DNA from: Macrostomum lignano
Taxonomy: Eukaryota
Direction: 5' to 3'
Length of the DNA stretch: 64,000 bases
Assembly (NCBI GenBank): GCA_002269645.1
Contig: NIVC01003610.1
Location: forward strand, 1 to 64,000
Shown here piece by piece: positions 12,091 to 51,452 of this stretch. Below the pieces are notes generated by a model. That model ran no database searches and was not told the origin of the DNA. It saw only the letters and a program-made list of their open reading frames with translations. Positions within the stretch are counted from its first letter, which is position 1. Each line of letters starts with the position of its first letter. The translations under genes were made by a program, and so were the position numbers.

Positions 12091-15000
12091 ATGAAGCTTC
12101 TGTGGGTCTCCGTGTATCTCCTGGTGCAGCTGCTTCTCTGCTTCGGCTCAGCAAGCGCGAGGCGCATCGCAGTGCTGGCTCAGACAGGCAGCGCCGACAG
12201 GTCCCTGGTGGAAGCTGCTGTGAGCAAGCTGGTCAACGGGCACTGGGTCTTCCCGCTGTTCAAGACGGAGCCTCTGAATTTCGAGTGGCTACAAGTTGCC
12301 GACGCTTTGGAAGCGGTTCAGAGAGGTGTTCAATTTTTCCACTGCAACTCTTTTATCACCTCAAAAATCAATTTATCACCACAGATTTCAAGACAAAACG
12401 AGTGCAGGAGACGGTGCGACATAAGGCTAACCGCAGTTTCGTGTTAGATTGACGCTAAAATAATTAGGCTGAGGTATTGGGTGGCCCGAGAATTACTAGT
12501 AGGCGTTACGTTACGCGGATCATTAGCATCTGTACTGTTTGGTATGACAGGGGTTGGATCTGAATCACACAGGTACAACGATACATTGTTCGGAGTCTTT
12601 CAACCAGCAAAGCTTTGTGGTTTGCTAACAAACCAGGTGAAATTGACAACTTTAACTTGTACTTTTAGCATGCAGCTCACCTACTCTCAGTGGCACGATT
12701 GTGATCGGGAACTGCGCATTTGTCTCAGATGTAATGAAACTGTCTGACTACATCAGCGTTCCTGCCATCACGCTCTCCAGTGACCTCTGCCAGCTTAGCA
12801 GCACCGGTAACTTTCTGAGCTTTGACATGTCCACTGATTTATCTCACTGGTTTTCGCTACCAGAAATCGCAAACCGAAACAAACTTTGCAGGTTTGAGCC
12901 TCGCATCAACGTCCAACGCGACAAGCTTTTTAGAAGCCGCAGCGGCAGTTTTGCAGCGGGTTGCGGCACCAGTGGCCGCTGTGCTCCACGACGAGTTCCA
13001 AGGTAAGTCCGAAGTTTCCCGATTAAAAATGAACTAGCCCATCAGATTCAGAAAGGATTTCACTCGCGCTTCAGACCACAAGCTCGTTGAGGAATTGCAG
13101 CTGGAGCTCTCCGCCAAAGGAATCGCTAGCTCAACTTTTCAGATAAATAATTCCGTCGGTAATCTGAATCTCACGTTGACAAACATGATCAAAGCTAAAA
13201 TTAGAAACATCGTAGTTCTGTGCGACCCAGGCACTGTTTTAAATATCGTTAACTTGGTAAGCTTTGAACTGCTTCAGTTTTGAGCATTCTGTTTAAAATG
13301 ATAGAAGAATTTTTCCAGGCCCAGAAAACAGGAACTCTGCAGCCGAACTACTTCTGGACAGTGATCGACACAGGAGTTCGACTTGCGTCGATCGAGGACC
13401 TGCTTCCTGCAAACGAGTCTGCAAACATTCTTGTGATCCGAGAGTCGGCCATCGACCTGAAAACGGCCTCAGCCGGTTGCACCTCACAGCTCAAGACCGT
13501 GTTTCCGGACTGCCAAACAAGCAGATACTCGGTAATAAGCCTTTATCTACAAACTTCTTGACAGATCTTAGTCGCTGTCGCTACCAAAAGACCCCTGAAC
13601 ATACCCGCAGATGCTGGAGCTGAAGGCGGTAGAGGCCGTGCTGTCGTTCGCCAGCGCTACGCATAGCTTACTAGACAGTTCCGGTCTTCCTGCCAGCAAC
13701 GTGTCGTGTCGGCCGTTGCAGCCGTGGTCGGCGGGTCCCGCACTGGCTGCGCAGCTGAAACAGGTACGGATTGAACAGGTGCTCAATTGATGATCTTCTT
13801 TGCGTTCAGATCTAATGTATTGACCTGTGCTGCACCTTATCCCCTTCTAATCTACTTTTATTTACTCTATCAACACAGCAGCAGTATCGATCATGATAGA
13901 TTACAAAATCTGTCTCAGTCTGCTCAGTCGTACCCGTTCACCTTTGTGTAGCTGCGACAGCCGCTGTCAGCTGGGAGCAGCTGGACACCCAGCGACTACT
14001 TCCTGGAGGTGCAGGCTACGTTCCACGATGAGTTCTCCGACCCGGTCCGCTTCGTCAACAGCGGCCGCTTCTTTGTAGGGAACGGCTCTCTGAGGTCAGC
14101 TTCCGCTACAGAGGTCGGAGCCTCATCTTCCCCAACACGTTTATCGACTTTAAAAATCGCACCTTAAGAGTCTGTGCGCCTGCGGTAAGCGTAGTGCGAG
14201 GTTGCGTTTGATTTCGTCTGTCGGGGGGGGGGGGGGGCTGCTCTCTTATTACTTGCATGTTGTAATTTACTCTTTGCATGCCGCCACCCCAGTCGGGTCA
14301 GTTATTTTAACCTTTTGCTGGCCATTTGACTCTGAATTCTCGGCTCTTACAGTAGTTTAGTTTATTGAAATTAAATAATGAGGCTACATGGTTTTCATAG
14401 TAGCATTCACATTTCAACTTTAGTCGCGGCCGTACATGCAGTACTCAAACGGAACGGTTGGCATTCCTGGTGCAATTTCCACCGACATCATTCACTTTCT
14501 CTCACTGCATCTGAACTATTCGTAAGTTACCTGAAATACACAAATGGGCTGAAATAGTAAGTTCCCAAGAATTTCCTGTCCACACCCTCGCAGCTACTCG
14601 CTGTTCGCTCCTGCGGACAATCAGTTCGGAGCGCCAGACCCGGCCTCGGTCTATTACACGGGCTGCATTGGCATGATTCAAAGAGGCGTAAGAAATATTC
14701 ACTTTTTAATCAGAATGTTTTGAAAAAATACTGGCTTCGAAGAGGGTACCCCCTGCTTTGCTCTGATTTGCAGGAAGCAGACATCACCATTCCCATGGCT
14801 ATTAACACATTTCGATCCAAGGTGATCGACTACTCTCAGGAGTACATGTTCTCATCGAATGCCATCTTGGTCAAGCGGCCGAATTCCGAGTCCAAGCTGT
14901 GGAATGTGTTTACGCCGCTTGCCTGGGACACGTGGCTGCTGATAGTCTGCATGCTCCTGTTGGTGCCGGGTGTCATCTTTCTGTTTGCCAGGCTCAGCCC

Positions 15001-17108
15001 GTTCTCCGCCTGGAACCTTGGTCTGCGATTCGCGTTTGCGGACGAGGTCTGGCTGAAGGAGTACATCTGGTCCGCCATAGGCAGCTTCATGCAGCAGGGC
15101 CAGGATTTCTATCCATTCGCCATGAGCCCCCGGACTGTTTTGGCGTTCTGGTGGATGCTCACTGTGATCATTTTTGGCACCTATACAGGTAAGTGTAGTG
15201 AGTGAAACGAGACTAGACTGCTTGTTGTATAGGACTCGTTATTCTGCGCAAATCTGCGCTTGCGTGCGCATTTTCGCGAACTACAGGGTTGCTGTAGTTT
15301 GTTTTTGTTGTTGTTGTTGTCGTTGTCGTCGATAGTTGCCGAAAGCTTGCAGGCGAGAAGAATTGCGATCAGTATATTTATTGAGTAATTGAGCTGAGTC
15401 AAGCTAAAGTCGCACCATGCACATTTGATATTGTACGCATAAGGGGAGAGCTAGCAGAATCACGCGGCGCAGCCGCTAACAACCGCCCCAACACACACGA
15501 TAGTAGGCGCTGCCTACAGTAAGTGTTCGAAAAGCCTTTTTGAGGCAAACGCTTTGTAGCTCGTATAGAAACATGAGCACAGTTTGTTTTTTAATGCCGC
15601 TATAAACTCCTATATCCGTCCCGATGAAGGCGATTTGACCTCAAAACTGGCCGTGACGGTTTCCAAGTACCCAATCGAAAGCCTGGAACAGCTGGTGTCC
15701 CTGCCGCAGTACAAGGCCATGGTGCCGCTCGGGACCAACATCTACTCTTCGATGATGGCCGCCACAGAGGGACCGCTGGTCAAGCTGCGGCAGATGAAAG
15801 TGCTGACGCAGTCCTTTGACACCTGCGCCATGAGTGTGAGCTACTAGCGCCAGCTGTACAAGCGCATTTGCACCAAACCACAGTTCATTACACAAGCTTA
15901 AGCTGCAATCAAACTGCTTTCAATTCTTTCAGCTGATTACCAGCACGGATCCTTACCTGGTGTGCATCTCTGACGTGAACGTGAACCTTCTGTACGCCAG
16001 CCGGTACTGCCAGTACGTGTACAATGTTTACAACTACTTCAATCCGTACTACATTGCAATCGCCTTTCCAAAGGACTCATATTATATCGATGCATTCAAC
16101 TTTTTGTAAGTAAAACTTCATTCTGACGCTTTGCGATGCTCTTTAATGCGTTTATATTAGTCTCAAAACGAAAATCTGAAACGAAAGGCAAAATGAACTC
16201 TTGGATTGGCAAATGGTGCTTTCAAGTAGCTTGTACTTATAATTTGTGGTTCACGCACATCAGTAAAACAAATTTAACTTTATTCAAATTTCAAAAATTT
16301 TATGAAAAGCAGCTGTAAGTTATTATCCAAAAACTAAACTATTAAAACTGACTAAACTTAGATGTTGCAGTAACACGTGGGATGCATTTGCATGTATTAA
16401 CAGCTAGAAATTTTTTCTGCTTGAATCGAATACTTCTAGTTAATATTTGGTATTGTCTTTAAGTGACTAATGGTACTATATTTAAATTCGAAAACTTCTT
16501 ATTGTTATTTTAGGTTCTTTTCGTAAATCTATGCGTATAATTTTTGGCCTACGAGCTACAATGTTACGACGTTAAGACGAAAGAACGTCATTAAGAAAAC
16601 GTAAAAAATTAGCAAAACAATTAGATCTCTGGGAAATAAAGCCAGGTGTCATCGTTATATTTCACCGTTATATTTTAGTTTAGCCCTAAATACCAATTAA
16701 AGGCAAATTAAAATTTCGCTAATGAAACTAAGAAACTTTTGATTCAATAATCATACAGACTTTTTAATAACTCTTTATTAATATTATCTTATCTTTTTAT
16801 AATAACTCATACTTATTATTCTGGGTACGAAAGCGTAAAGGCAGCATTTGCCTGCCAATTGCAGCATTCAGCGTGGCAAAGCTGCGGGCGTGGTCGACCT
16901 GATCAACAGCAAGTACATTCCACTGACCTCAGACTGCGGCACGGGCGCCACAGCGGCTGCCGAGGCGGCGGCCATCCCGCTGGAGGGCGTGGGAGGCGCC
17001 TACATCCTCAGCTTGGGGCTGTACGTGTGCGGCTTCCTCATCCTGCTGGTGGAGCTGCTCTGGGTGATCCTCATGAAGAAGGAAACGCTGGATTTTCCAG
17101 GATTTTGA
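12091..17108 (+). CDS. Divergent ionotropic glutamate receptor-like subunit, paralogue 1 (13 exons; apparent 1-nt deletion in exon 7)
   Basis: Exons: 12091-12325, 12669-12806, 12892-13002, 13075-13256, 13319-13531, 13611-13763, 13952-14184, 14424-14521, 14594-14687, 14774-15188, 15630-15835, 15933-16105, 16865-17108. Contains a signal peptide, ATD, S1 (ADITIPMAINTFRSKVIDYS), M1, M2 (WSAIGSFMQQG), M3 (WWMLTVIIFGTYTGDLTSKL), S2 and M4. The sum is 2495 nt, one short of a whole number of codons; exon 7 is 233 nt versus 234 nt in paralogues 2 and 3. Confidence 0.88.

Positions 17109-17379: not shown

Positions 17380-17383
<4 letters not shown>

Positions 17384-17410
<27 letters not shown>
17384..17410. 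repeat. (CT)n microsatellite
   Basis: Directly visible run of ~13 CT units. Confidence 0.9.
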
Positions 17411-17415
<5 letters not shown>

Positions 17416-18478: not shown

Positions 18479-21400
18479 ATGCCTGATACTAAAGCTTCTG
18501 ACCGAGCTGTCGCCGCGCCGCTCTGCGCTCTCCTCGCGCTGTCCACCTGCGCAGGAGCCGTCAAACTGGCGGTGGTCTCTCAGAACGGCAGCATTGGAGA
18601 CTTGGCCGTGAGCCGAGCCATCGACCTGCTCATCAACAACTACTGGAAGCTGACGGCATTCAAGACAAACCCCATGACGCACGTCTTTGTTCAGGCCAGC
18701 GATGCTGTCGAGGCTATGCGAGCTGGTACGCGTGCGCTGGTATACTCACTGCATCGCCAGTTAATGCAGTATAATTTTGAGCCACGGAGCGAACCATTTC
18801 AACCCCAATTTTTACGGAAGGTAGCCGAATTTTAGGTTTAGGTACAAATGATTTTTTCATGTCCGTAAAATTCCAGTGTGCAACACACCCGGCCTGCACG
18901 GAGTAGTCGCCGTGGGCTCCTGCGCCTTCGTGACCGACGTTCTGGCCGTCTCCACCTCAATCAGCGTGCCGGCCGTCGCTGTCTTTCGCGATCTCTGCTT
19001 CATCAACAATACCAATCGTATTTATATTTATTAAACTCTGTCTTTATGGCATGTGCTCCATGAAACAGTCAGTTAAAGAGTTTGCATTCCTCACAACTCC
19101 GCAGCCGTGACTCTAATCTCGAACCCGGACGTCGGAACTTTCCTGGAAGCTGCTGCGACAATCGTGAGTCGGCTCGAGCAAAAGGCCATCGTTGTCTTTT
19201 ACGATAAGTATCAAGGTAAGTCTCAAAGGTGCACGTACAGCTTTGCAGTGTGAGTCTCACAAGCTCTCTAATCTGATTGCAGATCACCGTCTTCTGGAGA
19301 AGCTGCAGCAACTGCTATCGGATAAAAGCATCCCCAGCCTGACTTTCCAAATCGATGACTCAGCAAGCAACCTGACCAGCATACTGAGAAACGTCGTTTG
19401 GAAGCGTTATCGAAACACATTGGTTCTGTGCACGCCTGAAAATGTCAACGCCGTTTTACGAGAGGTGCGAATTCATAATTGTTTTTGGCACACTTTATAC
19501 CTATCCTGGCATTCACTAAGAGCATGTTAATTCATTAGAGCCTTTCTCAACACAGGCTCGGAACACGGGCACACTGAAACTCAACTACTTCTGGACAGTG
19601 ATCGACACGGGAGTTCGACTTGTGTCCATCGAGGACCTGCTCCCTACAAACGAGTCTGCAAACATTCTTGTGATCCGAGAGTCGCCCATAGACTTGAAAA
19701 CGGCCTCAGCCGGTTGCACCTCACAGCTCAAGGCCGTGTTTCCGGACTGCCAAATGAGAAAATACTCGGTAAGCCTTTATTTACACACTTCTGCAATAGA
19801 TTCTAGGCGCTGTCACCAGCCCCAGACTCTGATCATGACTGTAGATGCTGGAGATGAAGGCAGTAGAGGCCGTGCTGTCGTTCGCCAGCGCTACGCAGAG
19901 CCTACTGGACAGTTCCGGTCTTCCTGCCAGCAACGCGTCGTGTCGGCCGTTGCAGCCGTGGTCGGCGGGTCCCGCACTAGCTGCACAGCTGAAGCAGGTA
20001 CGGATCGTACCGGAGCAGGTGCTCATGGATGATGTCGTCTGTCTCAGTCTGCTCAGTCGAAACCGTTCACCTTTGTAGCTGCGACAGCCGCTGTCAGCTG
20101 GGAGCAGCTGGACACCCAGCGACTACTTTCTGGAGGTGCAGGCTACGTTCCACGACGAGTTCTCCGACCCGGTCCGGTTCGTCAACAGCGGCCGTTTCTT
20201 TGTAGGGAACGGCTCTTTAGAGGTCAGCTTCCGCTACAGAGGTCGGAGCCTCATCTTCCCCAACACGTTTATCGACTTTAAGAACAAGACTATTCGGATT
20301 TGTTCTGTTGCGGTTCGTTGATTTTTCTTGTTAGTAAACCAACTGTCGTGTCCTCTTTGTTTCGCATTTGTTTCGCATTGTTTCGCATTTTAGACGAAAC
20401 CACAAACTGAGTACTTAAACGGAACTTTTGGCGTTGCCTCGGGTATCACTGCTGATCTGGCAGCTTTCTTTTCAAAACATCTGAATTTTAGGTAATGCCG
20501 AGTTAAGAGATGTTGATGTTATTTAAGTCGAACAGCTGAATCTCAAATTTTTATTTTAATCGGAAACACTTTTTTACTTTCAGTTACACGATTTTTACGC
20601 CCCCAGACAACCAGTTTGGGGCTCCAGTCCCTGGCTCGCTCTTCTACACAGGCTGTATCGGAATGGTTCAGAAGGGAGTGAGTGCCCTTGTTTTTTCCTT
20701 TTGCGAGAAATAAATATGCTGAATAGAGACTACATTAAGCTGGAAACGGTCCGCGGACGAATTGCAGGAGGCCGACTTTGCTACGCCCTTTGCCACCACG
20801 TTGATCCGGTCGCAGGTGATTGACTATTCAGAAGAGTTTATTTTCTCCTCCAACACCATTCTGGTGAAAAGACCCATGGCCGAGTCCAAGCTGTGGAATG
20901 TGTTTGCGCCGCTCTACTGGGATTCCTGGACTCTAATTGTGAGCATGTTTTTGGTAGTGCCGCTTCTCATCTACGGGTTGGCTAGCAGCAGCTCATTCAC
21001 TGGCTGGAACCTTCAACTCAGCTTCGCCTTTGCTGACGAGGTCTGGCTGAAGGATTACATTTGGTCAGCGATTGGCAGCTTCATGCAGCAGGGTCAGGAC
21101 TTTTATCCCTTTGCCATGAGTCCTCGAGTGGTGATGGCTTTCTGGTGGATGTTGACGGTTATCATATTCGCTTCGTACACTGGTAAGTTTGGTGCGTCTG
21201 TGACTTGTCAGCAATGCATGAAACCATGCAGCAATACAGGGACTCTCATTTGCAGGTGACCTCACGGCCAAGCTGGCAGTGACTGTGGCCAAGTACCCAA
21301 TCCAGAGCTTGGACGATCTCATCTCCAAGCCGCACTACAAGGCCATGCTGCCCAGAGGCACCAACATCTACGCTGCTGTGCTGAGCGCCACAGAGGGGCC

Positions 21401-22190
21401 GCTTGCCAAGCTTAGGGATCAGTGGGAGTTAGTTGACTCCTTCGACACCTGCGCTACGAATGTAAGTCCAGCGATGATGGCTTTGGCTTGTAGTTTTGGA
21501 TTTGATGCGTCAATTCAGCGTAGCGTTTTTCAAATTTGAATAAAGAGTGTTTGCTTGCGAAAATGCGAATCCAATTTTAAAAAATAGTCTTCGTATTCCT
21601 CGAATCGCGCAGCTGGTGACCATCAAGGACCCATACCTGGTGTGCATTTCGGATCTGATTGTTAGTCTGCACTACGCCAACGAGCTGTGCGAAGACATCT
21701 ACAACGCCGACAACTACTTCAACCCGTACTTTATGGCCATGGCCTTCCCTCAGGACGCTTACTACCTGCCCGCGGTTGACTTCCTGTGAGTTGGCCTGAA
21801 TGGCTGACGGCTTGGAGCTCAGAAGTTCTGTAGTTTAGTCTCAGGTTGTCAGCGAATGCATGAACGATGGAATCTTAGGAAGAGAATTTTTGAAATGTTT
21901 TTACTCTCAAACAGTTCTGAATGGAGCAGTTTTTTTTTTCTTTTAGGATTCAGAGAAGCAAAGCGAACGGCGTCATGAGCATGATCACTGGCAAGTACAT
22001 CCCCCAGACTGCCGAGTGCGGCTCCGCCGTCAGCGCGGCTGCTGAGGCTGCGGCCATCCCCCTGGAGGGCGTTGGCGGTGCCTACATCGTCAGTCTAGCA
22101 TTCTACGTGTGCGGCGGCGTCATCCTGCTCGTGGAGCTTTTCTGGGTGTTCAAACTAAAGAACGAGCCGCTGGATTTTCCGGGTTTTTAA
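18479..22190 (+). CDS. Divergent ionotropic glutamate receptor-like subunit, paralogue 2 (13 exons, intact, 836 aa)
   Basis: Exons: 18479-18725, 18877-19017, 19105-19215, 19283-19464, 19556-19768, 19845-19997, 20079-20312, 20394-20491, 20584-20677, 20768-21182, 21256-21461, 21613-21785, 21947-22190. All introns are GT-AG and the 2511 nt total is in frame. Motifs: FATPFATTLIRSQVIDYS, WSAIGSFMQQG, ASYTGDLTAKL, M4 GVGGAYIVSL, end EPLDFPGF*. Confidence 0.92.
18868..20292. repeat. Near-identical paralogous block (paralogue 2 exons 2-7 with introns; partner 26970-28396)
   Basis: Exons and introns 2-6 align almost base for base with paralogue 3; intron 1 and intron 7 onward do not align. Confidence 0.9.
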
Positions 22191-23030: not shown

Positions 23031-23038
23031 ATAACTGT

Positions 23039-26200: not shown

Positions 26201-29200
26201 ATGACCGCTTGGCACGCCAGCTTCCGAGCTGTCGCCGCGCCGCTCTGCGCTCTCCTCGCGCTGTCCACCTGCGCAGGAGCCGTCAAACTGGCGGTGGTCG
26301 CTCAGAACGGCAGCATTGGAGACTTGGCCGTGGGCCGAGCCATCGACCTGCTCATCAACAACTACTGGAAGCTGACGGCATTCAAGACAAACCCCATGAC
26401 GCACGTCTTTGTTCAGGCCAGCGATGCTGTCGAGGCTATGCGAACTGGTTGGTCTTATTACTAATAAGCTTTTCAGATGAGGCGTTGTGGTTCTGTCGCT
26501 CGGATAAGGAGATAACCTTGTAGCTTATCTCCTTAATCGCTCAAATCTACAAATCTAAATATTTACTGAGCGATTAAACTAGGCCATCAGAATATTGCTT
26601 ATATCATTTCCGCTTTAAAGTCAGAGACTCCTGAGGAGAGTCAGATTTCGATACACATTAGAAACTAAGATGCACTACACTACCAGTTGTTTTGCACCTG
26701 CCTCGGTTTTATATCTTCAACGCATTCTTTTTCGATTTAAAACTTAACAATACAGACAGTTTAGCTACAAGCGTAATTCAAGGCACATAAGTCTAGACAC
26801 TTCCATAAATGCCAGTTTAAAACATAATCCAAACCGCGCAAAACGATTTGTCCCACTACAAGTAGCATGTCTAGCAACGTACGAGTATGGTCAATAAATC
26901 TGTCACTGTCACCAAGCCACAGGCAAACAAAATTTGCATAGGTGCAGTTTTCTATGAAGACTGAAAAACAAATTCCAGTGTGCAACACACCCGGCCTGCA
27001 CGGAGTAGTCGCCGTGGGCTCCTGCGCCTTCGTTACCGACGTTCTGGCCGTCTCCACCTCAATCAGCGTGCCGGCCGTCGCTGTCTTTCGCGACCTCTGC
27101 TTCGTCAACAATACCAATCGTAATGATATTTATTAAACTCTGTCTTTATGACATGTGCTCCAAGAAACAGTCAGTTAAAGAGTTTGCATTCCTCACAATT
27201 TTGCAGCCGTGACTCTAATCTCGAACCCGGACGTCGGAACTTTCCTGGAAGCTGCTGCGACAATCGTGAGTCGGCTCGAGCAAAAGGCCGTCGTTGTCTT
27301 TTACGATAAGTATCAAGGTAAGTCACAAAGGTGCACAGCTTTGCAGTGTGAGTCTCACAAGCTCTCTAATCTGATTGCAGATCACCGTCTTCTGGAGAAG
27401 CTGCAGCAACTGCTATCGGATAAAAGTATCCCCAGCCTGACTTTCCAAATCGATGACTCAGCAAGCAACCTGACCAGCATACTGAGAAACGTCGTTTGGA
27501 AGCGTTATCGAAACACATTGGTTCTGTGCACGCCTGAAAATGTCGACGCCGTTTTACGAGAGGTGCGAATTCAGGATTGTTTTTGGCACACTTTATACCT
27601 ATCCTGGCATTCACTAAGAGCATGCTAATTCATTAGAGCCTTTCTCAACACAGGCTCGGAACACGGGCACACTGAAACTCAACTACTTCTGGACAGTGAT
27701 CGACACGGGAGTTCGACTTGTGTCCATCGAGGACCTGCTCCCTACAAACGAGTCTGCAAACATTCTTGTGATCCGAGAGTCGCCCATAGACTTGAAAACG
27801 GCCTCAGCCGGTTGCACCTCACAGCTCAAGGCCGTGTTTTCGGACTGCCAAATGAGCAAATACTCGGTAAGCTTTTATTTACAAACTTCTTCTGCAATAG
27901 ATTCTAGGCGCTGTCACCAGCCCCAGACTCTGATCATGACTGTACCAGTAGATGCTGGAGATGAAGGCAGTAGAGGCCGTGCTGTCGTTCGCCAGCGCTA
28001 CGCAGAGCCTACTGGACAGTTCCGGTCTTCCAGTCAGCAACGCGTCGTGTCGGCCGTTGCAGCCATGGTTGGCGGGTCCCGCACTGGCTGCGCAGCTGAA
28101 GCAGGTACGGATCGTACCGGAACAGGTGCTCATGGATGATGTCGTCTGTCTCAGTCTGCTCAGTCGAAACCGTTCAACTTTGTAGCAGCGACAGCCGCTG
28201 TCAGCTGGGAGCAGCTGGACACCCAGCGACTACTTCCTGGAGGTTCAGGCTACGTTCCACGACGAGTTCTCCGACCCGGTCCGGTTCGTCAACAGCGGCC
28301 GCTTCTTTGTAGGGAACGGCTCTTTAGAGATCAGCTTTCGCTACAGAGGTCGGAGCCTCATCTTCCCCAACACATTTATTGACTTTAAGAACAAGAGTCT
28401 GCGGATTTGCGCTGTCGCGGTAGGTGGAAGAGCAAAGAAATGAAAAATTTCGGTTATCTCTTTAGTCCTAAAATAGTTTTTCATTTTCAGTCGAAGCCCT
28501 ACACCATGTACTCCGGCGGGTTAGTGGGCAATGCTTCTGGCATTACAGCCGATTTGGCTGCGTTCTTTTCGAAGCATCTCAACTTCACGTACGATTGATT
28601 TACTTTAAATAAATGCTGGGGCTTTTGTCTAAACATCATATAATTTAGTTAAAGAGTTAAACATTAATTTTTCAGCTACTCGATCTTTACGCCACCGGAC
28701 AACCAGTTTGGCGCCCCGTCTCCTGGCTCCCCGTACTTTACAGGCTGCATCGGCATGGTGCAAAAAGGCGTGAGTAGCCCAGACTAACCAATTATTTCGA
28801 CAAGCTTGTCATTCTGAAATTGAACTCTTCCTCAAATCACATTTAGGAGGCCGACTTCGCCACACCATTCGCCATCACGACAATCCGATCGAAGGTGATC
28901 GACTATTCAGAAGAATTCCTTTTCTCCTCAAACACCATCCTGGTGAAAAGGCCCATGGCTGAGTCCAAGCTGTGGAATGTGTTTGCGCCGCTCTCCTGGG
29001 ACTCCTGGACTCTCATTGTGGCCATGTTCCTGGCCGTACCGCTCCTTATCTACGGGTTAGCTCGGCTGAGTCCATTCACTGGCTGGAACTTGAACTTGCC
29101 CTTTGCTTTTGCTGACGAGGTCTGGCTCAAAGAGTACATCTGGTCGACAGTGGGCAGCTTCCTGCAGCAGGGCCAGGACTTTTATCCGTTTGCCATGAGC

Positions 29201-31843: not shown

Positions 31844-32696
31844 TATATGATGCTTAAAACGTTATTTAACTTAAAAAGTAAAAGCCACATGATCTAGGAT
31901 AATCTTTTTTTACCTTTTTTATAAATGTACTACAAGTATTTTGGCGAAAGTCGTGGCGCCGTCGCCCCTTTTTTTGCGTCTCGCCTGCGTGAGCTTAAAA
32001 TATTTTCTACTTAAAGAGTTTTTCCAATTTCTAGCATCCCTGTTTGCATTCGATGCGCCAAATGTAGCTTTAATTTGAGCTGTTGCTTTTACGGGGTTGT
32101 TTCAGGAAATACCCTTTCGTACCAATAGTGACCTTGGATGTTACTACTAAAAGAAAAAAACCAGCGTTCTTTAGGTTTGATGAAGGAAAAGTCCCGCCTG
32201 GACAATGAGAAACCCGATCGCTGAAGCGAACCTCATTAAATAAGATATCGAAGGTGAAGCCAGGCAATTTGAAGGTTGCCAAGCCCTGCGGTAGATTCTA
32301 TTTCATAGAGATGCGGAACTCAGCAGTCCTGAGTCCCTTCTACCGCGGGTGTTTTGCCACCGGACCAACAGCACCGCGACTAAATAGCTGTAACTGGAAA
32401 CCCAATCGACTCAAGCTTGTTATCCGAAAAAGGTGAGATCTTTCTGGCTGCAAAGACAGGCATCAGGATGTAGTACAGAACACATCCCATCTTATGCTGC
32501 CTTGAAAATCGCCTGATCTCGTTAGAACCTTCCCATTTTTACTTAATGAGACTGCAGTTGAATAACCAGCCTCTGATCGATCGGAAACATCTGATACCAA
32601 AACCAGCTCCAGTTCAGCCAGATCTCAATAAATAGCTCCAGTGTCCCACTCCGGCAGCGGCTCGCGGCTCTCACACACGCGATCTTTAAGTCAGTC

Positions 32697-35600
32697 ATGT
32701 GGCACGAGCTGCGAACGCTGCTGCTCCTGCTGGCCCTGCACGCCTGCAGCGGGTCATCCGTGCGCCTGGCTGTTGTAAGCGAAGCCGGAAGTCTCGCGGA
32801 CAGTTCGATCATCACCACAGCGGTGGACAAGCTGGTCAACGGAAACTGGAGGTATCCGGCATTCAAGACCAGTCCGATGTCGCTGGAGCTGCTGCCGACT
32901 GCGGACTCAGTGGAGGCTGCGCAGAGAGGTAAAAACAGCTTGCGATACAAATGTATTGTAGAATTCTAAGAAAGAAAATTATGTACTCGTACTTTGGTGA
33001 CAATCAATAGCTGATTAGGTTCAACGACGACTTGCTTGCTTACCCGGAAAATCTCTTCTGAAACTTCAGTGTGTCGATCGACAGGTCTCAACGGCTTGGT
33101 CGTCGTCGGCTCTTGTCAGTTCGTCTCGGATGTGCTCAAAATCTCTGGCTCCCTACAATTACCGACAGTCGCAGTTCTCAGAGGCCTTTGTCGGCTACCC
33201 AGTGTGCCAGGTAAAACCCTTATTACCACAACCTATCTACTGACGCACACTTGCTTACATCACAGACAAGAATGAATCGCATGTCTTTACAGACTCAGCG
33301 ATCGTATCGAGTCCACTGGCGACTGACTTCTTGAGGGCGACCGCAGAAGCAATGGACCGAGTCTCCGCTAATCTGGTCGCTGTCCTTCACGACAGACAAC
33401 AGGGTGCGCATGTCTTCCTCAAGATTACTCGTAACGCCCCATTTGTAAGTTGACAGCAATGCCTTCCTCAACCATGGTGGCCAACACTCGTCATTGCAGA
33501 CCACTTGCTGCTTGAGCAGCTTCAGCAACTGCTCTCGGAGAAGAGAATCGCCAGCATGATGTTTCAGTTCGACGAGTCGGCCACCAATTTGACACAAATC
33601 CTGCAAAACAGCGTCAAGGCTCAGATTCGATACTGTGTGGTCGTCTGCGAGCCCGACAAGATCCCACTCGTCTTCGAGCAGGTGAGCTCAGGTACAAATT
33701 CTTTCGCACAATCGATTAGGGCTTAATATCATTTGGTTGTCATTCCAGGCTCGGAACACAGCCACACTGCAGATCAACTACTTCTGGACCGTGATTGACA
33801 CAGGAATTTCGCCAAGAACTATCGAGACTCTGATCCCCGCGAATGGGTCTGCGAACATCCTCTTGATCCGTGAGTCGGCAGTTCTTCTCAAAGAAATGGA
33901 CTGCTCTGTAGATCTCGGAGTCGTGTATCCGGACTGCCAGTTCAGCAAGCGTTCGGTGAGGAACTCGTTCCCTGCAAACTTCTTCTGCGATGGAGCTTAG
34001 GCGCTGGCGATCTATCTGCAGTAGACCCTGAATATCCCTCAGATGCTGGAGCTGAAGGCGTTGGAGGCCGTGCTGTCATTCGCCAGAGCTACACAGAGCC
34101 TGCTGGACAGCTCCGACCTCGGCCTGACCGCCAGCAACGCGTCGTGTCGGCCGCTGCAGCCGTGGTCGGCGGGTCCCGCAGTGGCTGCGCAGCTGAAGCA
34201 GGTTGGAGTTCAGTTGCCTGTCTGACTCAGATTCTTAGCGACATGTGCGATTTGTGGTTGAGTTTGCTTTACACCGGCATACTTAATAGCTGAATCAGAG
34301 AACAGAAAGCAAAGCTTACTGGAACCACGGCTGTAATTAATGCTTAACCCCATATTTCCTGGCATGCCTCATAGCAGCGGCTCAGCCCAGCCAACGGAAG
34401 TGCGGGGCACCGGAGCGACTACTTCCTGGAGATGCTGGGCCTGCTTAGCAACCCGGAGGCAGTCGCGGAACTAGTGCCAAGCGGCCGGTTTATCGTCGAG
34501 AACGGCAGCCTTGTAGTGACCTTCGAGTACAAGGAGCGCGAGCTGCTGTTTCCCAACACCTTCGTGGACTTCAAGGGAGCTCGACTGCGGGTCTGCGCGC
34601 CGCCGGTAAGGGCTTTCTTTTCAGCGAAATATGTAACTTTTGCCTCGTTTCTCGAATTTACTTGCAATCAAATATCTCTTTTGGTGCAGATCTTAAATAA
34701 TAATAATTGATTACCCATGCCCCAATGGTCAAGCGACAGCTCAGCCGCAGCTATTGCGCGGCGCCTCTGAATGCTGCGTACGGCTGTTCAGTCCAAGGAC
34801 TCTCAATCGCTACTCACCCTCAATTATCCCAGCTAATGTTGGTACCCATTTTTCAGCTTTGTGAACTGAAGCAATGCAGAGTTATGTTTTATTGTTCATG
34901 CTCAAAGACAAATTGTTTCGAGCGGGTCGAGAATCGAATTCCCGACCTTTCAGTCATGAGTCAGACGCACTCCCAATGGGCTACAACCCCCCTGAAGACG
35001 CTGAGGTTGTCTGATGAAGCTTAATTTTGTTTTAAATTGTGCTTGGAGTAATGAAGTAGTGTTCGATTCATACAGTTGTGCAAACAGTAAAACGCTGGAA
35101 ATGACTTAATTCATATAATGAAGCAAAACTGGCATGATTTAATTATCTTGTCTGCATGCTAAGCTGATACTCTGCATGAACCAATCCAGTTTCCACCTTA
35201 CACGGTCTACGAGAACTACACATTTGGCAGAGCTTCTGGACACTCGGTCGAAATGCTTAGCTACTTTACCAGGCACCTCAATTTTACGTAAGCCATATTA
35301 TTTTTCATCAGTCATCTCTACATGAAAATATGCTTCATTTTTTATGCCTCAATTTGAAGGTACGACCTGTTCTCTCCGCCGGATAACCAGTTCGGGGCAC
35401 CTGTGGAGGGCTCACCCTACTTTACTGGCTGCATCGGCATGCTGCAGAAAAGAGTGAGCGCAGTGAACATACGAGCGTATGTTCACTTCCAAATGAATTC
35501 AACACACTGAATGACTGAATCTGTTTCTGTCTTTCAGCAAGCGGATTTCGCGATGCTGTTCGCTACTACTACTTTCCGCCATAAAGTAGTCGACTACTCG

Positions 35601-37654
35601 GATGAGTACCAGTTCTCGTCCAACACCATCCTAGTGAAAATGCCTCCACCAGAGTCCAAGCTGTGGAATGTGTTCACGCCGCTCTCCTGGGACTCTTGGC
35701 TGCTCATTATTGCCATGTTCGTCATTGTTCCAGTCGTTATCTTCATTTTCGCCAAGCTCAGTCCCTTTAGCGCCTGGACTTTGGGCTTGCCTTATGCGTT
35801 TTCTGACGAAGTCTGGCTAAAGGAATACGTCTGGTCGGTCATTGGCAGCTTCTTGCAGCAGGGCCAGGACTTTTACCCGTTCTCGATGAGTCCTCGAACT
35901 GTCATGGCGTTCTGGTGGATGCTCACAGTAGTCATTTTTGGAGCATATACAGGTGGTTAAGCTAGGTTGTTTTATCAAATCTAATGCTTATGACTGCAGT
36001 TGATCAAATGTTAGTGCGTTTTCTATCCCTTTCCTTCAGGGGACCTCACGGCCAAGCTTGCTGTGACGGTGGCCAAGTACCCGATCGAGAGCTTGGAGGA
36101 TCTGATCGCCAGGCCGCACTACAAGGCCATGGTTGCCCAGGGCACCAACATCTACGGCTCAATCATGCTGGCGACGGAAGGTCCCTTGACTATGCTACGC
36201 AAACAGATGGAGCTTGTTGACACAATGGCCACCTGCGCCGAGACTGTGAGTTTGAGTGTCATGGTTTTAGATTGATTTACATTCGATGAAGTCAACAAAG
36301 CCTGAGGCTCTCAGTCAGGTCTGAAAAAGCACTTCACCGAACTTACCCTCAGCTCCTCAAGCCGGACGCGAGCCCGTACCTGGTGTGCGTCTCAGACCAG
36401 AGCAGCAATTCTTATTACGCCAGCGCATTCTGCAAGCAGGTTTACCAAGCCAAAAATTTCTTCAACTTTTACTACTTGGCTATGACGTTTCCACAGGATG
36501 TCTACTACCTTCCAGCATTTGACTTTCTGTAAGTTTCATATTCTTCATTATCCTTTAATGTTCTTGAATATAGCTACCTTCATTAGCTGTCATATATAGC
36601 TGTCATTAGGTTTTATGACATTTGGTTATATTTTATTTATTTTATACTTTGGTTATATTTTATTACACGTATAGTGCCAGGTGAAAAAAAAACTAACTGA
36701 GCTTTGCAGCCGCAATTTTACGATTTTTTCGGCTTCAAATCCCCACCAGCGACAACCAAACTTCAAAACCCAGCACGACATTCCACAACCAAACCTCGAA
36801 CAACAGAATAACACTCCACAACCAAACCTCTAACAACAGAATAACACTCCACAACCAAACCTCGAACAACAGAATAACACTCCACAACCAAACCTCGAAC
36901 AACAGAATAACACTCCACAACCAAACCTCGAACAACAGAATAACACTCCACAACCAAACCTCGAACAACAGAATAACACTCCACAACCAAACCTCGAACA
37001 ACAGAATAACACTCCACAACCAAACCTCGAACAACAGAATAACACTCCACAACCAAACCTCGAACAACAGAATAACACTCCACAACCAAACCTCGAACAA
37101 CAGAATAACACTCCACAACCAAACCTCGAACAACAGAATAACACTCCACAACCAAACCTCGAACAACAGAATAACACTCCACAACCAAACCTCGAACAAC
37201 AGAATAACACTCCACAACCAAACCTCGAACAACAGAATAACACTCCACAACCAAACCTCGAACCACAGAACGATACTATATTCTACAGCCGAACATTGAA
37301 CCACCACAGAACTAAGTGCCACAACCGAACCTTGAACCACCACAGAACTAAGTGCCACAACCGAACCTCGAACCAGAACATGTAAAGTCACAGCAAAAAC
37401 TCGAACCCTACAGACTGCAGCGCGGCAAGGAGAGCGGCTTCGTCGATGTGGTGACTCGCAAGTTCATTCCTTCGACAAGCGACTGCAACGTCAACACGGC
37501 CGCCGCTGAGGCCGCAGCCATCCCACTGGAGGGTGTGGGTGGCGCCTACATCGTCAGTCTGTCGCTCTACCTGTGCGGCGGTGTCATCCTGCTGATCGAG
37601 CTGTTCTGGGTGGTCAGGCTGCAGAGGGACCCGCTCGATATGCCCGGATACTGA
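32697..37654 (+). CDS. Divergent ionotropic glutamate receptor-like subunit, paralogue 4 (13 exons, intact, 830 aa)
   Basis: Exons: 32697-32928, 33070-33210, 33293-33403, 33500-33681, 33749-33955, 34043-34201, 34375-34605, 35190-35287, 35360-35453, 35538-35952, 36040-36245, 36353-36528, 37414-37654. The 2493 nt total is in frame. Motifs: WSVIGSFLQQG, GAYTGDLTAKL, end DPLDMPGY*. Confidence 0.92.
34708..34992 (-). mobile_element. tRNA-headed SINE copy (intron 7 of paralogue 4)
   Basis: The minus strand has A-box-like TAGCCCATTGG and B-box-like GAATTCGATTC. The body is shared with the copies at 40727 and 50138 (GACAGCTCAGCCGCAGCTATTGCG...GCTGTTCAGT.CAAGGACT). Confidence 0.7.
36780..37265. repeat. 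33-bp minisatellite, ~14.5 copies (intron 12 of paralogue 4)
   Basis: Unit AACAGAATAACACTCCACAACCAAACCTCGAAC, followed by two related ~35-bp variants up to ~37370. Confidence 0.95.
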
Positions 37655-47014: not shown

Positions 47015-49088
47015 AACCTTTCATTTTTACTTAATGAGACTGCAGTTGAATAACCAGCCTCTGATCGATCGGAAACATCTGATACCAAAACCGGATTCAG
47101 TTCAGTAAGATCTCAATAAATAGCTCCAGTGTCCCACTCCGGCAGCGGCTCGCGGCTCTCACACACGCGATCTTTAAGTCAGTCATGTGGCACGAGCTGC
47201 GAACGCTGCTGCTCCTGCTGGCCCTGCACGCCTGCAGCGGGTCATCCGTGCGCCTGGCTGTTGTAAGCGAAGCCGGAAGTCTCGCGGACAGTTCGATCAT
47301 CACCACAGCGGTGGACAAGCTGGTCAACGGAAACTGGAGGTATCCGGCATTCAAGACCAGTCCGATGTCGCTGGAGCTGCTGCCGACTGCGGACTCAGTG
47401 GAGGCTGCGCAGAGAGGTAAAAACAGCTTGAGATACAAATTTATTGTAGAATTCTAAGAAAGAAAATTATGTACTTTGGTGACAATCAATAGCTGATTAG
47501 GTTCAACGACGACTTGCTTGCTTACCCGGAAAATCTCTTCTGAAACTTCAGTGTGTCGATCGACAGGTCTCAACGGCTTGGTCGTCGTCGGCTCTTGTCA
47601 GTTCGTCTCGGATGTGCTCAAAATCTCTGGCTCCCTACAATTACCGACAGTCGCAGTTCTCAGAGGCCTTTGTCGGCTACCCAGTGTGCCAGGTAAAACC
47701 CTTATTACCACAACCTATCTACTGACGCACACTTGCTTACATCACAGACAAGAATGAATCGCATATCTTTACAGACTCAGCGATCGTGTCGAGTCCACTG
47801 GCGACCGACTTCTTGAGGGCGACCGCAGAAGCAATGGACCGAGTCTCCGCTAATCTGGTCGCTGTCCTTCACGACAGACAACAGGGTGCGCATGGCTTCC
47901 TCAAGATACTCTCGCCTGTAAGTTGACAGCAATGCCTTCCTCAACCATGGTGGCTAACACTCGTCATTGCAGACCACTTGCTGCTTGAGCAGCTTCAGCA
48001 ACTGCTCTCGGAGAAGAGAATCGCCAGCGTGATGTTTCAGTTCGACGAATGGCCACCAATTTGACCAAATCCTGCAAAACAGCGTCAAGGCTCAGATTCG
48101 ATACTGTGTGGTCGTCTGCGAGCCCGACAAGATCCCACTCGTCTTCGAGCAGGTGAGCTCAGGTACAAATTCTTTTGCACAATCGATTCGGCTTAATATT
48201 ATTTGGTTGTCATTCCAGGCTCGGAACACAGCCACACTGCAGATCAACTACTTCTGGACTGTGATTGACACAGGAATTTCGCCAAGAACTATCGAGACTC
48301 TGATCCCCGCGAATGAGTCTGCGAACATCCTCTTGATCCGTGAGTCGACAGTTCTTCTCAAAGAAATGGACTGCTCTGTAGATCTCGGAGTCGTGTATCC
48401 GGACTGCCAGTTCAGCAAGCGTTCGGTGAGGAACTCGTTCCCTGCAAACTTCTTCTGCGATGGAGCTTAGGCGCTGGCGATCTATCTGCAGTAGACCCTG
48501 AACATCCCTCAGATGCTGGAGCTGAAGGCGTTGGAGGCCGTGCTGTCATTCGCCAGAGCTACACAGAGCCTGCTGGACAGCTCCGACCTCGGCCTGACCG
48601 CCAGCAACGCGTCGTGTCGGCCGCTGCAGCCGTGGTCGGCGGGTCCCGCAGTGGCTGCGCAGCTGAAGCAGGTTGGAGTTCAGTTGCCTGTCTGACTCAG
48701 ATTCTTAGCGACATGTGCAATTTGTGGTTGAGTTTGCTTTACACCGGCATACTTAATAGCTGAATCAGAGAACAGAAAGCAAAGCTTAATTGCCCTAATA
48801 GAAGCACGGCTTCTTGTAATTAATGCTTAACCCCATATTTCCTGGCATGCCTCATAGCAGCGGCTCAGCCCAGCCAACGGAAGTGCGGGGCACCGGAGCG
48901 ACTACTTCCTGGAGATGCTGGGCCTGCTCAGCAACCCGGACGCAGTCGCGGAACTCGTGCCAAGCGGCCGGTTTATCGTCGAGAACGGCAGCCTTGTAGT
49001 GACCTTCGAGTACAAGGAGCGCGAGCTGCTGTTTCCCAACACCTTCGTGGACTTCAAGGGAGCTCGACTGCGGGTCTGCGCGCCGCCG
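47015..49088. repeat. ~2.1-kb near-identical duplicate of 32527-34605 (upstream region plus exons 1-7 of paralogue 4)
   Basis: Upstream DNA, exons and introns align almost base for base. Identity ends at the exon 7 donor (GCGCCGCCG|GTAAGG versus GCGCCGCCG|GTTAGT). Confidence 0.92.
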
Positions 49089-51452
49089 GTTAGTCACGAA
49101 TAGCTGAAGACTTGATGTTTTACTTCATAATAAGAAATTGGGATTACGCTCGTAAAATGGTATGAAGGGCATTGCTTGTTTCTTCAGATAAGAAAAAGTA
49201 ACAAATAATTATTTCGGGACGTTATTTATGTTAGTGATAAAGTAGTTGTAACATTTTAATAATAAACCTTATCTAATAACGAGTCCCATTTTCCCAACCA
49301 GTTCCCGCCTTTCACCAGGTACAGCAACTACACCTTTGGCACGGCTTCTGGCCACTCGGTGGATATGGTCAACTATTATGCCTCGCATCTGAATTTTTCG
49401 TATGTCTGAATCAGATTTGCATTGAGCCTCAACTCATTCTCCGTTGCATTATAGAGTACAGAAACTTATTGACCTTCATTGCGGCAGGTATGACATTTTC
49501 TCCCCACCGGATATCCAGTTCGGAGCGCCGGTCGAAGGATCGCCCTACTTCAGCGGTTGCATCGGCATGCTGCAGAGAGGAGTGAGGACAGCGCCTGCTT
49601 AATGATAATTTATGTTATAAAGTACAGTTTGCTCGAATTGACAGTCTGAAACTCTGTTCTCGTTGCCTTCTTCCCAGGAAGCCGAGTTTGCCATGCCGTT
49701 TGCCATCACCAACATTCGCTACCAAGTGATCGACTACTCAGAGGACTACATGTTCTCCGCCAACACCATTCTGGTGAAGCGGCCGCCATCAGAGTCCAAG
49801 CTGTGGAATGTGTTCACGCCGCTGGCCTGGGACTCCTGGCTGCTCATTCTCGGCATGCTCGTCTTCGTTCCCATCATCGTGTTTGTGCTCGCCAGCTGCA
49901 ATCCGTTCTCCGGGTGGAATCTACGCATCTCGTACGCGTTTGCCGATGAGGTGTGGCTGAAGGAGTACATCTGGTCAGTGATTGGCAGCTTCCTGCAGCA
50001 GGGCCAGGACTTCTATCCCTTCGCTATGAGCCCCCGCACTGTTCTGGCCTTCTGGTGGATGCTCACCGTTATTCTCTATGGCGCATACACAGGTGAGGCT
50101 GACGTCTGCATTGTCTTTTCAATACGTAATATTAATTGATTACACCTGCCTGGGCAGGTGTGCAACCGACAGCTCAGCCGCAGCTATTGCGCGGCGCATC
50201 TGAAGGCTGAGTACAGCTGTTCAGTTCAAGGACTGAGGGATTGCCACACACTTTCAATTACCCCAGCTAATGCTGGCACCCATTTTACAGCTGGGTGAAC
50301 TGAAGCATTGCAGAGTTAAGCGTCTAGCTCAAGGACACAAATTGTTCCGGGTGGATCGAGAATCGAACCCCTGACCTTTCGGTCGTGAGTCCGATGTTCT
50401 AGCCATTAGACTATAACCCCCTAGTAGGCTACAACCCAAAGTTTTGTCTTGATAGCCGTGAGTTATCGGCGTCATTTTACTGTTGTTTTTCTCTTACCGG
50501 ACAGGGGACCTCACGGCCAAGCTGGCTGTGACGGTGGCCGAGTACCCGATCCAAAGCTTGGAAGACCTGGTCTCCATGCCGCACTACAAGGCCATGGTTG
50601 CCCGGGGCACCAACATCTACGCGACTATCATGCTGGCAACTGACGGACCCATGGCTTTGCTGCGCAGGCAGATGGTTGTCGTAGACACAATGACTACCTG
50701 CGCTGAAACCGTGAGCTGATGCCCTGGTTCTTTGTTGGCTGTTCTGTTGTATAAAATGCATGGGGTCCTAATTAGCTATAGATATCATTGATGCCGACCA
50801 TTCCAGCTGCTGATTAAGGACGCCGACCCGTACATGGTGTGCATCTCGGACAAGAGCAGCAACTCGTTCTATGCCAGCGCATTCTGCAGCCAGGTGTACC
50901 AGGCCACCAGCCTTTTTAACTATTACTACCAGGCGATGACGTTTCCCAGAGATGCCTATTACCTGCCGGCGTTCGACTTGCTGTACGTTTTCTTCATTCC
51001 GCATTCCTTCTGGTTTTTATGCAATGCAAACAAACTGTACACATTCTGTGCGAAGTGTGTCGTTGCAGAGAATGATACGCCGAAATTAAAACTTTGATCT
51101 GAAGTGCAAAGCGGGGGTTTATTGGGGCTGATACCTCCAAGAAGGCCAGAAAAGCGAAAACCTGTGAATTCTCAAAACCATTAAAGTAGCTGACTCCTCC
51201 CAACTCTGCAGTCTTCAGCGCGGCAAGGAGAGCGGCGTCGTGGATGTTGTGACTCGGAAGTACGTCCCGCAGAGCAACGACTGCGGCGGCAGCAACGCGG
51301 CTGCTCAGGCGGCGGCCATATCGCTGGAGGGTGTCGGAGGCGCCTACATCATCTGCCTGGGCCTGTACGTGTGCGGTGGGCTCGTCCTGCTGGTGGAGCT
51401 GCTCTGGGTGATGTGGCTCGGGAAGCAGCCACTGGACATGCCAGGATACTGA
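47185..51452 (+). CDS. Divergent ionotropic glutamate receptor-like subunit, paralogue 5 (13 exons; two 1-nt deletions in exon 4, so possible pseudogene or assembly error)
   Basis: Exons: 47185-47416, 47552-47692, 47775-47885, 47973-48152 (180 nt versus 182 nt in paralogue 4), 48219-48425, 48513-48671, 48858-49088, 49302-49399, 49488-49581, 49678-50092, 50505-50710, 50807-50982, 51212-51452. As assembled there is a premature TGA at 48062-48064. Downstream exons are clean, ending QPLDMPGY*; AATAAA at 51516. Confidence 0.85.
50138..50422 (-). mobile_element. tRNA-headed SINE copy (intron 10 of paralogue 5)
   Basis: Same family as the copies at 34708 and 40727; B box GGGTTCGATTC on the minus strand; TGTCCTTGAGCTAGACGCTTAAC core-like segment. 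Confidence 0.7.

Follow-up and report, generated by a model that had tools for sequence, protein, structure and literature searches.

What kind of receptor is encoded by five consecutive genes of the flatworm Macrostomum lignano that carry the features of ionotropic glutamate receptors (iGluRs) in an altered form? The genes, here g1 to g5, lie between positions 12091 and 51452 of a 64,000-nucleotide stretch of genomic DNA (contig NIVC01003610.1, assembly GCA_002269645.1, forward strand), which we refer to as the window. We consider it likely, taking the reading as a whole, that they encode full-length iGluR-type subunits from a Macrostomum-specific tandem expansion within a flatworm-wide clade, and that gene conversion or unequal exchange shaped their 5' halves. 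The five genes are still iGluRs and hold no surprise of kind. The most interesting results are a conserved rewriting of four positions in the channel gate and a concerted evolution of the halves encoding the amino-terminal domain (ATD) that is bounded by that domain. What is known of iGluR classification and biophysics comes mostly from vertebrates and arthropods, along with a few non-bilaterian receptors.

Five genes share one exon-intron structure

The gene models started from stop-to-stop open reading frames (ORFs) on the plus strand between 12 and 52 kb, which showed repeated iGluR-like peptides. The coding frame of each block was obtained by comparing the ORF pieces among the five intervals, and models were then built by hand, with GT-AG introns chosen for frame retention, stop-free coding and a homologous position in every copy. 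All five genes lie in tandem on the plus strand, from the ATG of g1 at the start of the array to the stop codon of g5 at its end (Table 1). Each has 13 exons and 12 introns, all of them GT-AG, at homologous positions and with the same phases in all copies (1,1,1,0,0,0,0,2,0,1,0,2), so that the original prediction of five co-oriented genes with an identical 13-exon structure was borne out. Exons 8 to 11 have equal lengths throughout (98, 94, 415 and 206 nt), and exons 1, 2, 5, 6, 7, 12 and 13 differ by a few codons among the copies, frameshifts aside. Most introns measure 62-240 nt. The products of 830-836 amino acids (aa) comprise a signal peptide, an ATD, a ligand-binding domain (LBD) made of segments S1 and S2, and the membrane segments M1-M4. 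A tblastn search with all five products found no iGluR fragment in the window beyond the five gene spans.

The products keep all iGluR domains

The transmembrane module was recognized by Pfam as Lig_chan (PF00060; 3e-22 and 6.5e-23, above the curated cut-off) and the S1S2 LBD as Lig_chan-Glu_bd (PF10613; 2.5e-12 and 4e-12). S1 and S2 align with GluA1 on both sides of M1-M3, which is the arrangement of a bilobed LBD interrupted by the channel. The best matches among solved structures were GluA1 (E 1.7e-36, 129 bits, a low score for two full-length iGluRs) and GluD1 (120 bits), and they were collinear from the ATD to M4. The domain order of ATD, S1, M1, pore loop, M3, S2 and M4 is thus that of the AMPA (GluA1-4), Delta (GluD1/2) and kainate receptors, which together with Phi form the AKDF group. 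Hydropathy profiles showed the signal peptide and, in every copy, peaks for M1 and M4. M3 exceeded the threshold only in g2 and was placed by alignment in the remaining copies.

The ATD was barely detectable by sequence, another difference from AKDF receptors. Pfam ANF_receptor gave a weak match (2e-6), with g2 at 27.6 bits just over the cut-off of 25.4 and g4 at 19.8 bits under it. A profile of the ATD alone, however, matched exclusively iGluR ATDs (GluK1-3, GluD2 and GluA4; E 4.6e-5 to 1e-3) and was collinear with GluD2 over ~310 residues. Weak as they are, matches this specific indicate that the ATD is kept and very divergent, in agreement with the original prediction.

Pore, gate, pocket and tail motifs

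Motif positions were read from an alignment with ~80 relatives and anchor sequences. In g1-g5 the pore loop reads GSF[M/L]QQGQDFYPF; its Q/R/N site is Gln, and Asp follows at +4. The [M/L]QQG pore with the +4 Asp is a likeness to AKDF receptors, and the initial description of this pore as AMPA/kainate/delta-like was right about the motif GSF[M/L]QQG. QQG is not class-specific, however, since the Trichoplax Epsilon receptors have FLQQG in the alignment of Ramos-Vicente et al. 2018 (eLife). In AKDF and Epsilon receptors alike, how Ca2+ permeates and how polyamines block the pore depends on the Q/R/N site and the +4 position (PMC12226733), and the residues found here predict a Ca2+-permeable channel with polyamine rectification.

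The M3 gate is rewritten. It reads [S/T/A]YTGDLT[A/S]KLAVTV in the five genes, compared with SYTANLAAFLTV in canonical receptors. Relative to SYTANLAAF the changes are A4G, N5D, A7T and F9K, or four of the nine positions, and g1 has a fifth (A8S). The canonical gate is absent from all five genes, while the altered version is conserved across them. Residue A7 is the proposed agonist-controlled gate residue in NMDA receptors, and the classical Lurcher substitution is A8T (PMC3434102). The Lurcher substitution itself does not occur in g1-g5, where the Thr sits one position earlier. Given the substitutions in M3, these channels probably depart from canonical receptors in gating kinetics or open probability.

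The ligand pocket combines kept and changed positions. In GluA2 numbering, the equivalent of Arg485 is invariant within [IF]R[SHY][KQ]V[IV]DYS, and the equivalent of E705 is an Asp within C[IV]SD, as in the delta-like sequences of the alignment. Positions 485 and 705 form the backbone-binding pair, whereas 653 and 655 are selectivity determinants (PMC8437780). Residues 653-655 are G-T-N in g1-g5 and G-S-T in glutamate-type receptors. The T480 equivalent is Ala, T655 is replaced by Asn, and the Y450 equivalent is a non-aromatic I, S or H. The two cysteines of the LBD disulphide are invariant and, like the Arg485 equivalent, are shared with AKDF receptors. The kept Arg485 equivalent, the acidic residue at 705 and the disulphide would suit an alpha-amino-acid-type ligand, whose identity is made unpredictable by the changes at 480, 655 and 450. 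The C-terminal tail is only ~12 residues long and ends in LDFPGF or LDMPGY, again unlike AKDF receptors. The alignment of g1-g5 therefore confirms the shared non-canonical gate, pocket and tail motifs that had been reported from the first inspection of the DNA.

The locus thus offers three intact and compact genes (<5 kb) that keep all iGluR domains under purifying selection, with the 'invariant' SYTANLAAF changed at four positions including A7. The altered gate is a natural experiment on how much gate variation is tolerable in a working channel.

A flatworm-wide clade, probably outside the named classes

An exhaustive HMMER protein search, run with an alignment limited to exon 10, returned 1220 proteins at E <=0.001, of which 12 had E <=1e-30. 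The top matches were all UniProt predictions from M. lignano. By falling score these were followed by more M. lignano paralogues and by proteins from Cichlidogyrus (Monogenea), Spirometra and Sparganum (Cestoda), and Paragonimus, Clonorchis and Opisthorchis (Trematoda), which shows that the family extends beyond both the array and the species. Since these relatives include parasitic flatworms, the pharmacology of the channels could have applied interest. Lower-scoring relatives comprised four proteins from read-archive assemblies, along with sequences of Tubulanus, Owenia, Mytilus, Pecten and Nucella that carry the annotation 'glutamate receptor-like' or 'delta-1-like'.

Public M. lignano models of the family are fragmentary or chimeric. 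P0001 (A0A1I8FU98) begins within exon 7 and continues into non-iGluR sequence past M4, P0002 (A0A1I8HNV3) has its domains in scrambled order, and P0004 (A0A1I8I4V2) is a fusion of 2220 aa that also contains unrelated, low-complexity sequence and a piece of another iGluR of canonical appearance. Family counts based on such models are therefore unreliable.

We determined the relationships with a neighbour-joining (NJ) tree of the S1-M4 region (85 sequences, 411 columns, Kimura distances, 100 bootstraps). Its anchors (plant GLRs, Epsilon, Phi and NMDA) were hand-transcribed from the alignment of Ramos-Vicente et al. 2018; Lambda, Zeta, group II AKDF and IR25a/IR8a anchors were not part of the set, and the labels AMPA-, kainate- and delta-like reflect motif reading rather than curated names. 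Bootstrap values were 95% for g1-g5, 100% for a clade of ten sequences from M. lignano only that holds g1-g5, 90% for the flatworm clade with monogenean, cestode and trematode members, and 97% for this clade together with that of the read-archive proteins. Adding the sister clade of nemertean, annelid and mollusc proteins gave a spiralian clade at 84%. A monophyletic g1-g5 inside a Macrostomum-only clade supports the proposal of an independent, lineage-specific expansion of ATD-bearing iGluRs, and none of the five genes was a one-to-one orthologue of a known clade when compared with every class anchor in the tree.

Within the flatworm clade are M. lignano PAA64923.1 (P0010), Cichlidogyrus KAL3310748.1, Spirometra VZI22347.1, Clonorchis KAG5447008.1 (annotated 'kainate 5') and Paragonimus KAF5404236.1. 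Like g1-g5, they have N-terminal regions long enough for an ATD, an xQG-[QC]-[DE]-x-YP pore loop and degenerate gates (YTADM, YQAEL, WQADM). They differ in that S1-M4 identity is 25-31%, Thr or Ser is kept at the 480 equivalent (PFTMT, PITIS) and the GDLTAK gate occurs in none. The one locus examined, that of the distant member P0010 (L001, positions 10001-28109 of NIVC01001700.1, GCA_002269645.1), is a single gene over 18 kb. It forms no tandem array, has introns much longer than those of g1-g5 and is flanked by Ribosomal_L32e and SARAF genes.

The sister clade consists of Tubulanus XP_074655756.1, Owenia CAH1794110.1, Mytilus XP_052069391.1, Pecten XP_033737179.1 and Nucella KAL8573212.1, and it shows the highest similarity outside flatworms (26-28%). 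Three signatures are common to it and g1-g5: S1 contains GPFT, S2 has a P-[LVI]-[VIA] hinge followed by G-[TS]-N, and the 705 equivalent is Asp. In contrast to the QQGQDFYPF pore and rewired gate of g1-g5, its members have a near-canonical gate (YTANLAA[FY/L]LTV) and E/N/Q-QGG pores.

Outside the spiralian clade, similarity is low. The S1-M4 region of g2 and g4 is 38-52% identical to M. lignano paralogues and 26-31% identical to P0010 and the lophotrochozoan clade, compared with 25-27% for delta-like and ~24% for AMPA-like sequences (~23-27% for AKDF receptors overall) and 20-30% for Epsilon, kainate, NMDA and Phi, whose alignments were shorter or scored lower. No class anchor compared exceeded ~31%. 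Both the best PDB matches and the pairwise scores put AMPA and Delta ahead of Epsilon and NMDA. Placement within the AMPA, kainate, Delta or Phi clades was not found, as g1-g5 fell outside the AKDF-like clades. Phi membership in particular was rejected, since the pore of the amphioxus GluF anchors is VGQG and in the tree they join the sequence P0123 beside AMPA/kainate; their scores were the lowest among the animal anchors. NMDA membership was also rejected, as all non-NMDA animal sequences grouped at 71% with the NMDA anchors outside, and the Q/R/N site of g1-g5 is Gln, not Asn. Judged by the tree distances, g1-g5 would be about as far from each compared class as these classes are from one another.

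Could g1-g5 still belong to a class that already has a name, whether Epsilon, Delta, the 'Zeta' receptors of molluscs or the bilaterian 'group II' AKDF, as fast-evolving members that a long-branch effect has isolated? Support near the root of the non-NMDA sequences is weak, since the spiralian clade groups with the Epsilon anchors GluE1_Bbe and GluE7/9_Tad at only 10% bootstrap and the AKDF side stands at 16%. The FLQQG of Trichoplax Epsilon receptors and the 'delta-1-like' mollusc and annelid proteins in the sister clade fit this possibility too. Zeng et al. 2021 name a mollusc-only Zeta class, and Commun Biol 2025 reports an uncharacterized group II AKDF in molluscs and annelids as well as Capitella Epsilon receptors. 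Compared by description only, the lophotrochozoan sister clade may be one of these, 'Zeta' or 'group II AKDF'. However, the 84% spiralian clade contains no anchor of any named class (among the anchors used), and identity to the Delta-like, Epsilon and Phi anchors is just 20-30%. We regard membership in a named class as improbable.

Flatworms are not mentioned in the iGluR phylogenies of eLife 2018 or Commun Biol 2025, and trees that include planarians go no further than 'numerous other uncharacterized genes' within AKDF (Rosano et al. 2024, PMC10861852; also a 2026 Biochemistry paper). In Simanov et al. 2012 (PMC3447372), 67 transcripts of M. lignano appear under 'ionotropic glutamate receptor activity' but are not analysed. 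We found no description of the flatworm clade, its gate motif or the array in the open-access literature. The suggestion that the family might be undescribed thus holds for its function, but the clade is flatworm-wide and already present in UniProt as unnamed predictions.

Selection and probable gene conversion divide the genes into two halves

We next compared the five copies at the DNA level. Whole-gene dN/dS, the ratio of nonsynonymous to synonymous divergence (Nei-Gojobori), was 0.22-0.27 for every pair, including those with g1 and g5. By half, it was 0.15-0.23 for the part encoding the LBD and transmembrane domain (TMD) and 0.22-0.51 for the ATD part. The low values in the LBD-TMD half indicate constraint by purifying selection.

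Synonymous divergence differed strongly between the halves. In g2/g3, dS was 0.05 in the ATD half and 0.64 in the LBD-TMD half, and in g4/g5 the values were 0.02 and 0.84. In both pairs identity is 92-100% across exons 1-7 and most of the intervening introns, with the exception of g2/g3 intron 1 (67%), which is owing to a length difference. It drops abruptly where exon 7 ends, to 64-94% in exons 8-13 and 58-72% in introns 7-12, the latter barely above unrelated flanking sequence. The g2/g3 tract begins ~20 nt inside exon 1, and that of g4/g5 starts upstream of the ATG (Table 1). An older block in g1/g2 covers exons 5-7: exon 7 is still at an identity of 0.91, and intron 7 falls to 0.57. Since exon 7 ends just before S1, the break lies near the ATD/LBD junction. 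We rejected extreme purifying selection as an explanation for the near-identity of the 5' halves, because most introns in them are 92-99% identical too. Homogenization that includes introns points to gene conversion or unequal exchange and not to selection at the protein level.

These patterns suggest that the array grew through tandem duplication and that gene conversion or unequal exchange now holds the ATD-encoding halves near-identical within neighbouring pairs. The LBD-pore half is diverging under the purifying selection seen in its dN/dS. That the homogenized part is the dimer-forming assembly domain is perhaps no coincidence: we speculate that it could keep neighbouring gene products co-assembling. 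The array is a test case for concerted evolution of an assembly domain beside divergence of a ligand and pore module.

Amino-acid-gated channels or a chemosensory repertoire

The intact copies most likely assemble as tetrameric, non-selective cation channels gated by an extracellular ligand. The original prediction had raised the possibility of a chemosensory or otherwise non-synaptic repertoire. By analogy with the ionotropic receptors (IRs) of arthropods and other protostomes, which are likewise divergent iGluR derivatives that expand by lineage-specific tandem duplication, duplication would here diversify LBDs in peripheral sensory cells. Besides the tandem and lineage-specific nature of the expansion, this would fit the divergence of the LBD-pore half (dS 0.64-0.84) next to a homogenized ATD half, the pocket positions unlike those of glutamate-type receptors, and the 67 iGluR-like transcripts listed for M. 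lignano under the Gene Ontology term, compared with 12 human genes (PMC3447372).

The core pocket, however, is identical in the five copies (Arg485 and Asp705 equivalents, G-T-N at 653-655), so the paralogues do not look tuned to different ligands. Diversifying selection was not seen at gene scale, where dN/dS is low, and there are only five genes in the array. Most divergent IRs have lost the ATD and the conserved ligand-contact residues. By contrast, g1-g5 keep the ATD, Arg485, the acidic 705 and the Q/+4D pore, which speaks against the pattern of a divergent IR. With the Arg and acidic residue kept and dN/dS low, an ordinary amino-acid-gated channel fits at least as well as a chemosensory or non-synaptic role, and we consider the latter unlikely.

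A bolder interpretation is offered tentatively, as a possibility of low probability. The flatworm clade, perhaps with its lophotrochozoan sister, would be a distinct iGluR class ranking with Phi or Epsilon, the Macrostomum branch with its rewired gate and altered pocket would respond to a non-glutamate ligand or gate unusually, and conversion would keep the ATDs of adjacent paralogues identical, so that subunits differing in their LBD-pore halves could still co-assemble.

Returning to full-length subunits of a Macrostomum expansion, several points weigh against our interpretation. The tree is distance-based with hand-transcribed anchors, the flatworm branches are long, and the basal nodes reach only 10-16%. 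The ATD match is weak, and two of the five copies (g1 and g5) are frameshifted. Finally, the non-canonical gate could signal a subunit that is non-conducting or constitutively leaky.

Integrity of the copies

As assembled, three of the five genes are open, with 836 codons in g2, 836 in g3 and 830 in g4. Exon 7 of g1 has one base fewer than in g2/g3 (TCTCT-GAGGTC), and exon 4 of g5 lacks two single bases relative to g4, 15 nt apart, which leads to an in-frame TGA directly after FQFDEWPPI. g1 and g5 may be very young pseudogenes or may contain assembly indels. The near-identical block of g4/g5 contains ten indels, eight in introns and two in exons. This mostly intronic pattern resembles real evolution more than random error, which need not hold for the two exonic indels.

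A BLASTP alignment of P0001 with g5 spans 455 aa, beginning in exon 7 and reaching late exon 13, at 99.6% identity. It marks M. lignano as the source species and gives independent support for the splice junctions within this stretch. In exon 13 of g5 the window encodes QRGKESGVVDVV, whereas P0001 has QRGKESGGVVDVV, with one extra in-frame Gly. This difference suggests that P0001 represents another allele, homeologue or assembly version of g5.

Collapsed haplotypes, which had been named as an outcome that would overturn the expansion, were rejected: the copies are distinct paralogues that stand in series on one stretch and share 58-90% aa identity pairwise. That the array is largely non-functional or artefactual, consisting of decaying pseudogenes, or of haplotypes or homeologues from a neopolyploid genome that were assembled as false duplicates or chimeras, is very unlikely: the frameshifts, the near-identical 2-kb blocks in adjacent copies, the second version of g5 seen in P0001 and the neopolyploidy and repeat-rich assembly of M. 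lignano (references given in PMC11886862) would fit it, but three copies are fully open across 13 exons with intact GT-AG sites, dN/dS is low (0.15-0.25) even in pairs with g1 or g5, the g4/g5 indels are concentrated in non-coding sequence, the 3' halves are too divergent for alleles (dS 0.64-0.84, introns unalignable), and three pairs break where exon 7 ends, a coincidence not expected from random misassembly.

Coordinates and neighbouring features

Table 1. Positions of the five genes, their motifs and homogenized tracts, and other features of the window
Feature	Positions	Strand	Remarks
g1	12091..17108	+	13 exons; frame broken in exon 7 (1-nt deletion after 14091); conceptual product 831 aa
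g1 exons	12091-12325, 12669-12806, 12892-13002, 13075-13256, 13319-13531, 13611-13763, 13952-14184, 14424-14521, 14594-14687, 14774-15188, 15630-15835, 15933-16105, 16865-17108	+	
g2	18479..22190	+	intact, 13 exons, 836 aa
g2 exons	18479-18725, 18877-19017, 19105-19215, 19283-19464, 19556-19768, 19845-19997, 20079-20312, 20394-20491, 20584-20677, 20768-21182, 21256-21461, 21613-21785, 21947-22190	+	
g2 pore loop GSFMQQGQDFYPF	21074-21112	+	
g2 M3 gate SYT/GDLTAKLAVTV	21173-21287	+	split by intron 10
g3	26201..30549	+	intact, 13 exons, 836 aa; aa identity to g2 90%
g3 exons	26201-26447, 26979-27119, 27207-27317, 27381-27562, 27654-27866, 27952-28104, 28186-28419, 28491-28588, 28676-28769, 28847-29261, 29495-29700, 29809-29981, 30306-30549	+	
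g4	32697..37654	+	intact, 13 exons, 830 aa; 33-bp minisatellite inside intron 12
g4 exons	32697-32928, 33070-33210, 33293-33403, 33500-33681, 33749-33955, 34043-34201, 34375-34605, 35190-35287, 35360-35453, 35538-35952, 36040-36245, 36353-36528, 37414-37654	+	
g5	47185..51452	+	13 exons; frame broken in exon 4 (two 1-nt deletions, after 48050 and 48065); conceptual product 830 aa
g5 exons	47185-47416, 47552-47692, 47775-47885, 47973-48152, 48219-48425, 48513-48671, 48858-49088, 49302-49399, 49488-49581, 49678-50092, 50505-50710, 50807-50982, 51212-51452	+	
Homogenized tract, g2	18500..20312	+	vs g3 ~26224-28419; exons 1-7 94-99%, introns 2-6 92-98%
Homogenized tract, g4	32530..34605	+	~165 nt upstream of ATG to end of exon 7
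Homogenized tract, g5	47015..49088	+	partner of g4; 38 differences in 2.07 kb, introns included
Fibrinogen-related gene	41643-44227	-	ORF 44227-43415 with signal-peptide-like start; Pfam Fibrinogen_C at 42814-42380 (6.6e-8) and 42041-41643 (1.7e-20)
Claudin-like ORF	53643-54371	-	242 aa; Pfam Claudin_2 (PMP-22/EMP/MP20/claudin, 9e-9)
Minisatellite/microsatellite regions	10319-10597, 22234-22313, 23039-23677, 24575-25100, 31436-31844, 36778-37375, 39229-39914, 53090-53606, 61446-62131, 62787-63482		periods 14-66 bp
Dispersed ~260-bp repeat	34698-34962, 40726-40947, 50127-50391		g4 intron 7; intergenic; g5 intron 10
GC-rich stretches	4000-10400, 60700-64000		53-60% GC
Flanks of GC-rich stretches	1-4000, 55000-60000		30% GC

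The 9.5-kb spacer between g4 and g5 holds a fibrinogen-related gene, and a claudin-like ORF lies 2.2 kb downstream of g5. The claudin-type superfamily includes the TARP-type auxiliary subunits of iGluRs. That such a gene adjoins an iGluR array may be chance, and a PDB sequence search with the ORF gave no match.

Ten minisatellite or microsatellite regions, with unit identities of mostly 94-100% and a few of 88-91%, fill the intergenic spacers, apart from the one in g4 intron 12, and are the source of many long spurious ORFs. A dispersed repeat of ~260 bp, with copies 79-81% identical, is probably a small mobile element, and it explains some of the variation in intron length among the paralogues. 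ARAGORN found no tRNA-like part in this repeat and nothing elsewhere in the window, where Rfam at gathering thresholds also gave no match.

The ORFs tested in the two GC-rich stretches had no Pfam match. Both stretches carry long overlapping ORFs on both strands and are flanked by sequence of much lower GC content.

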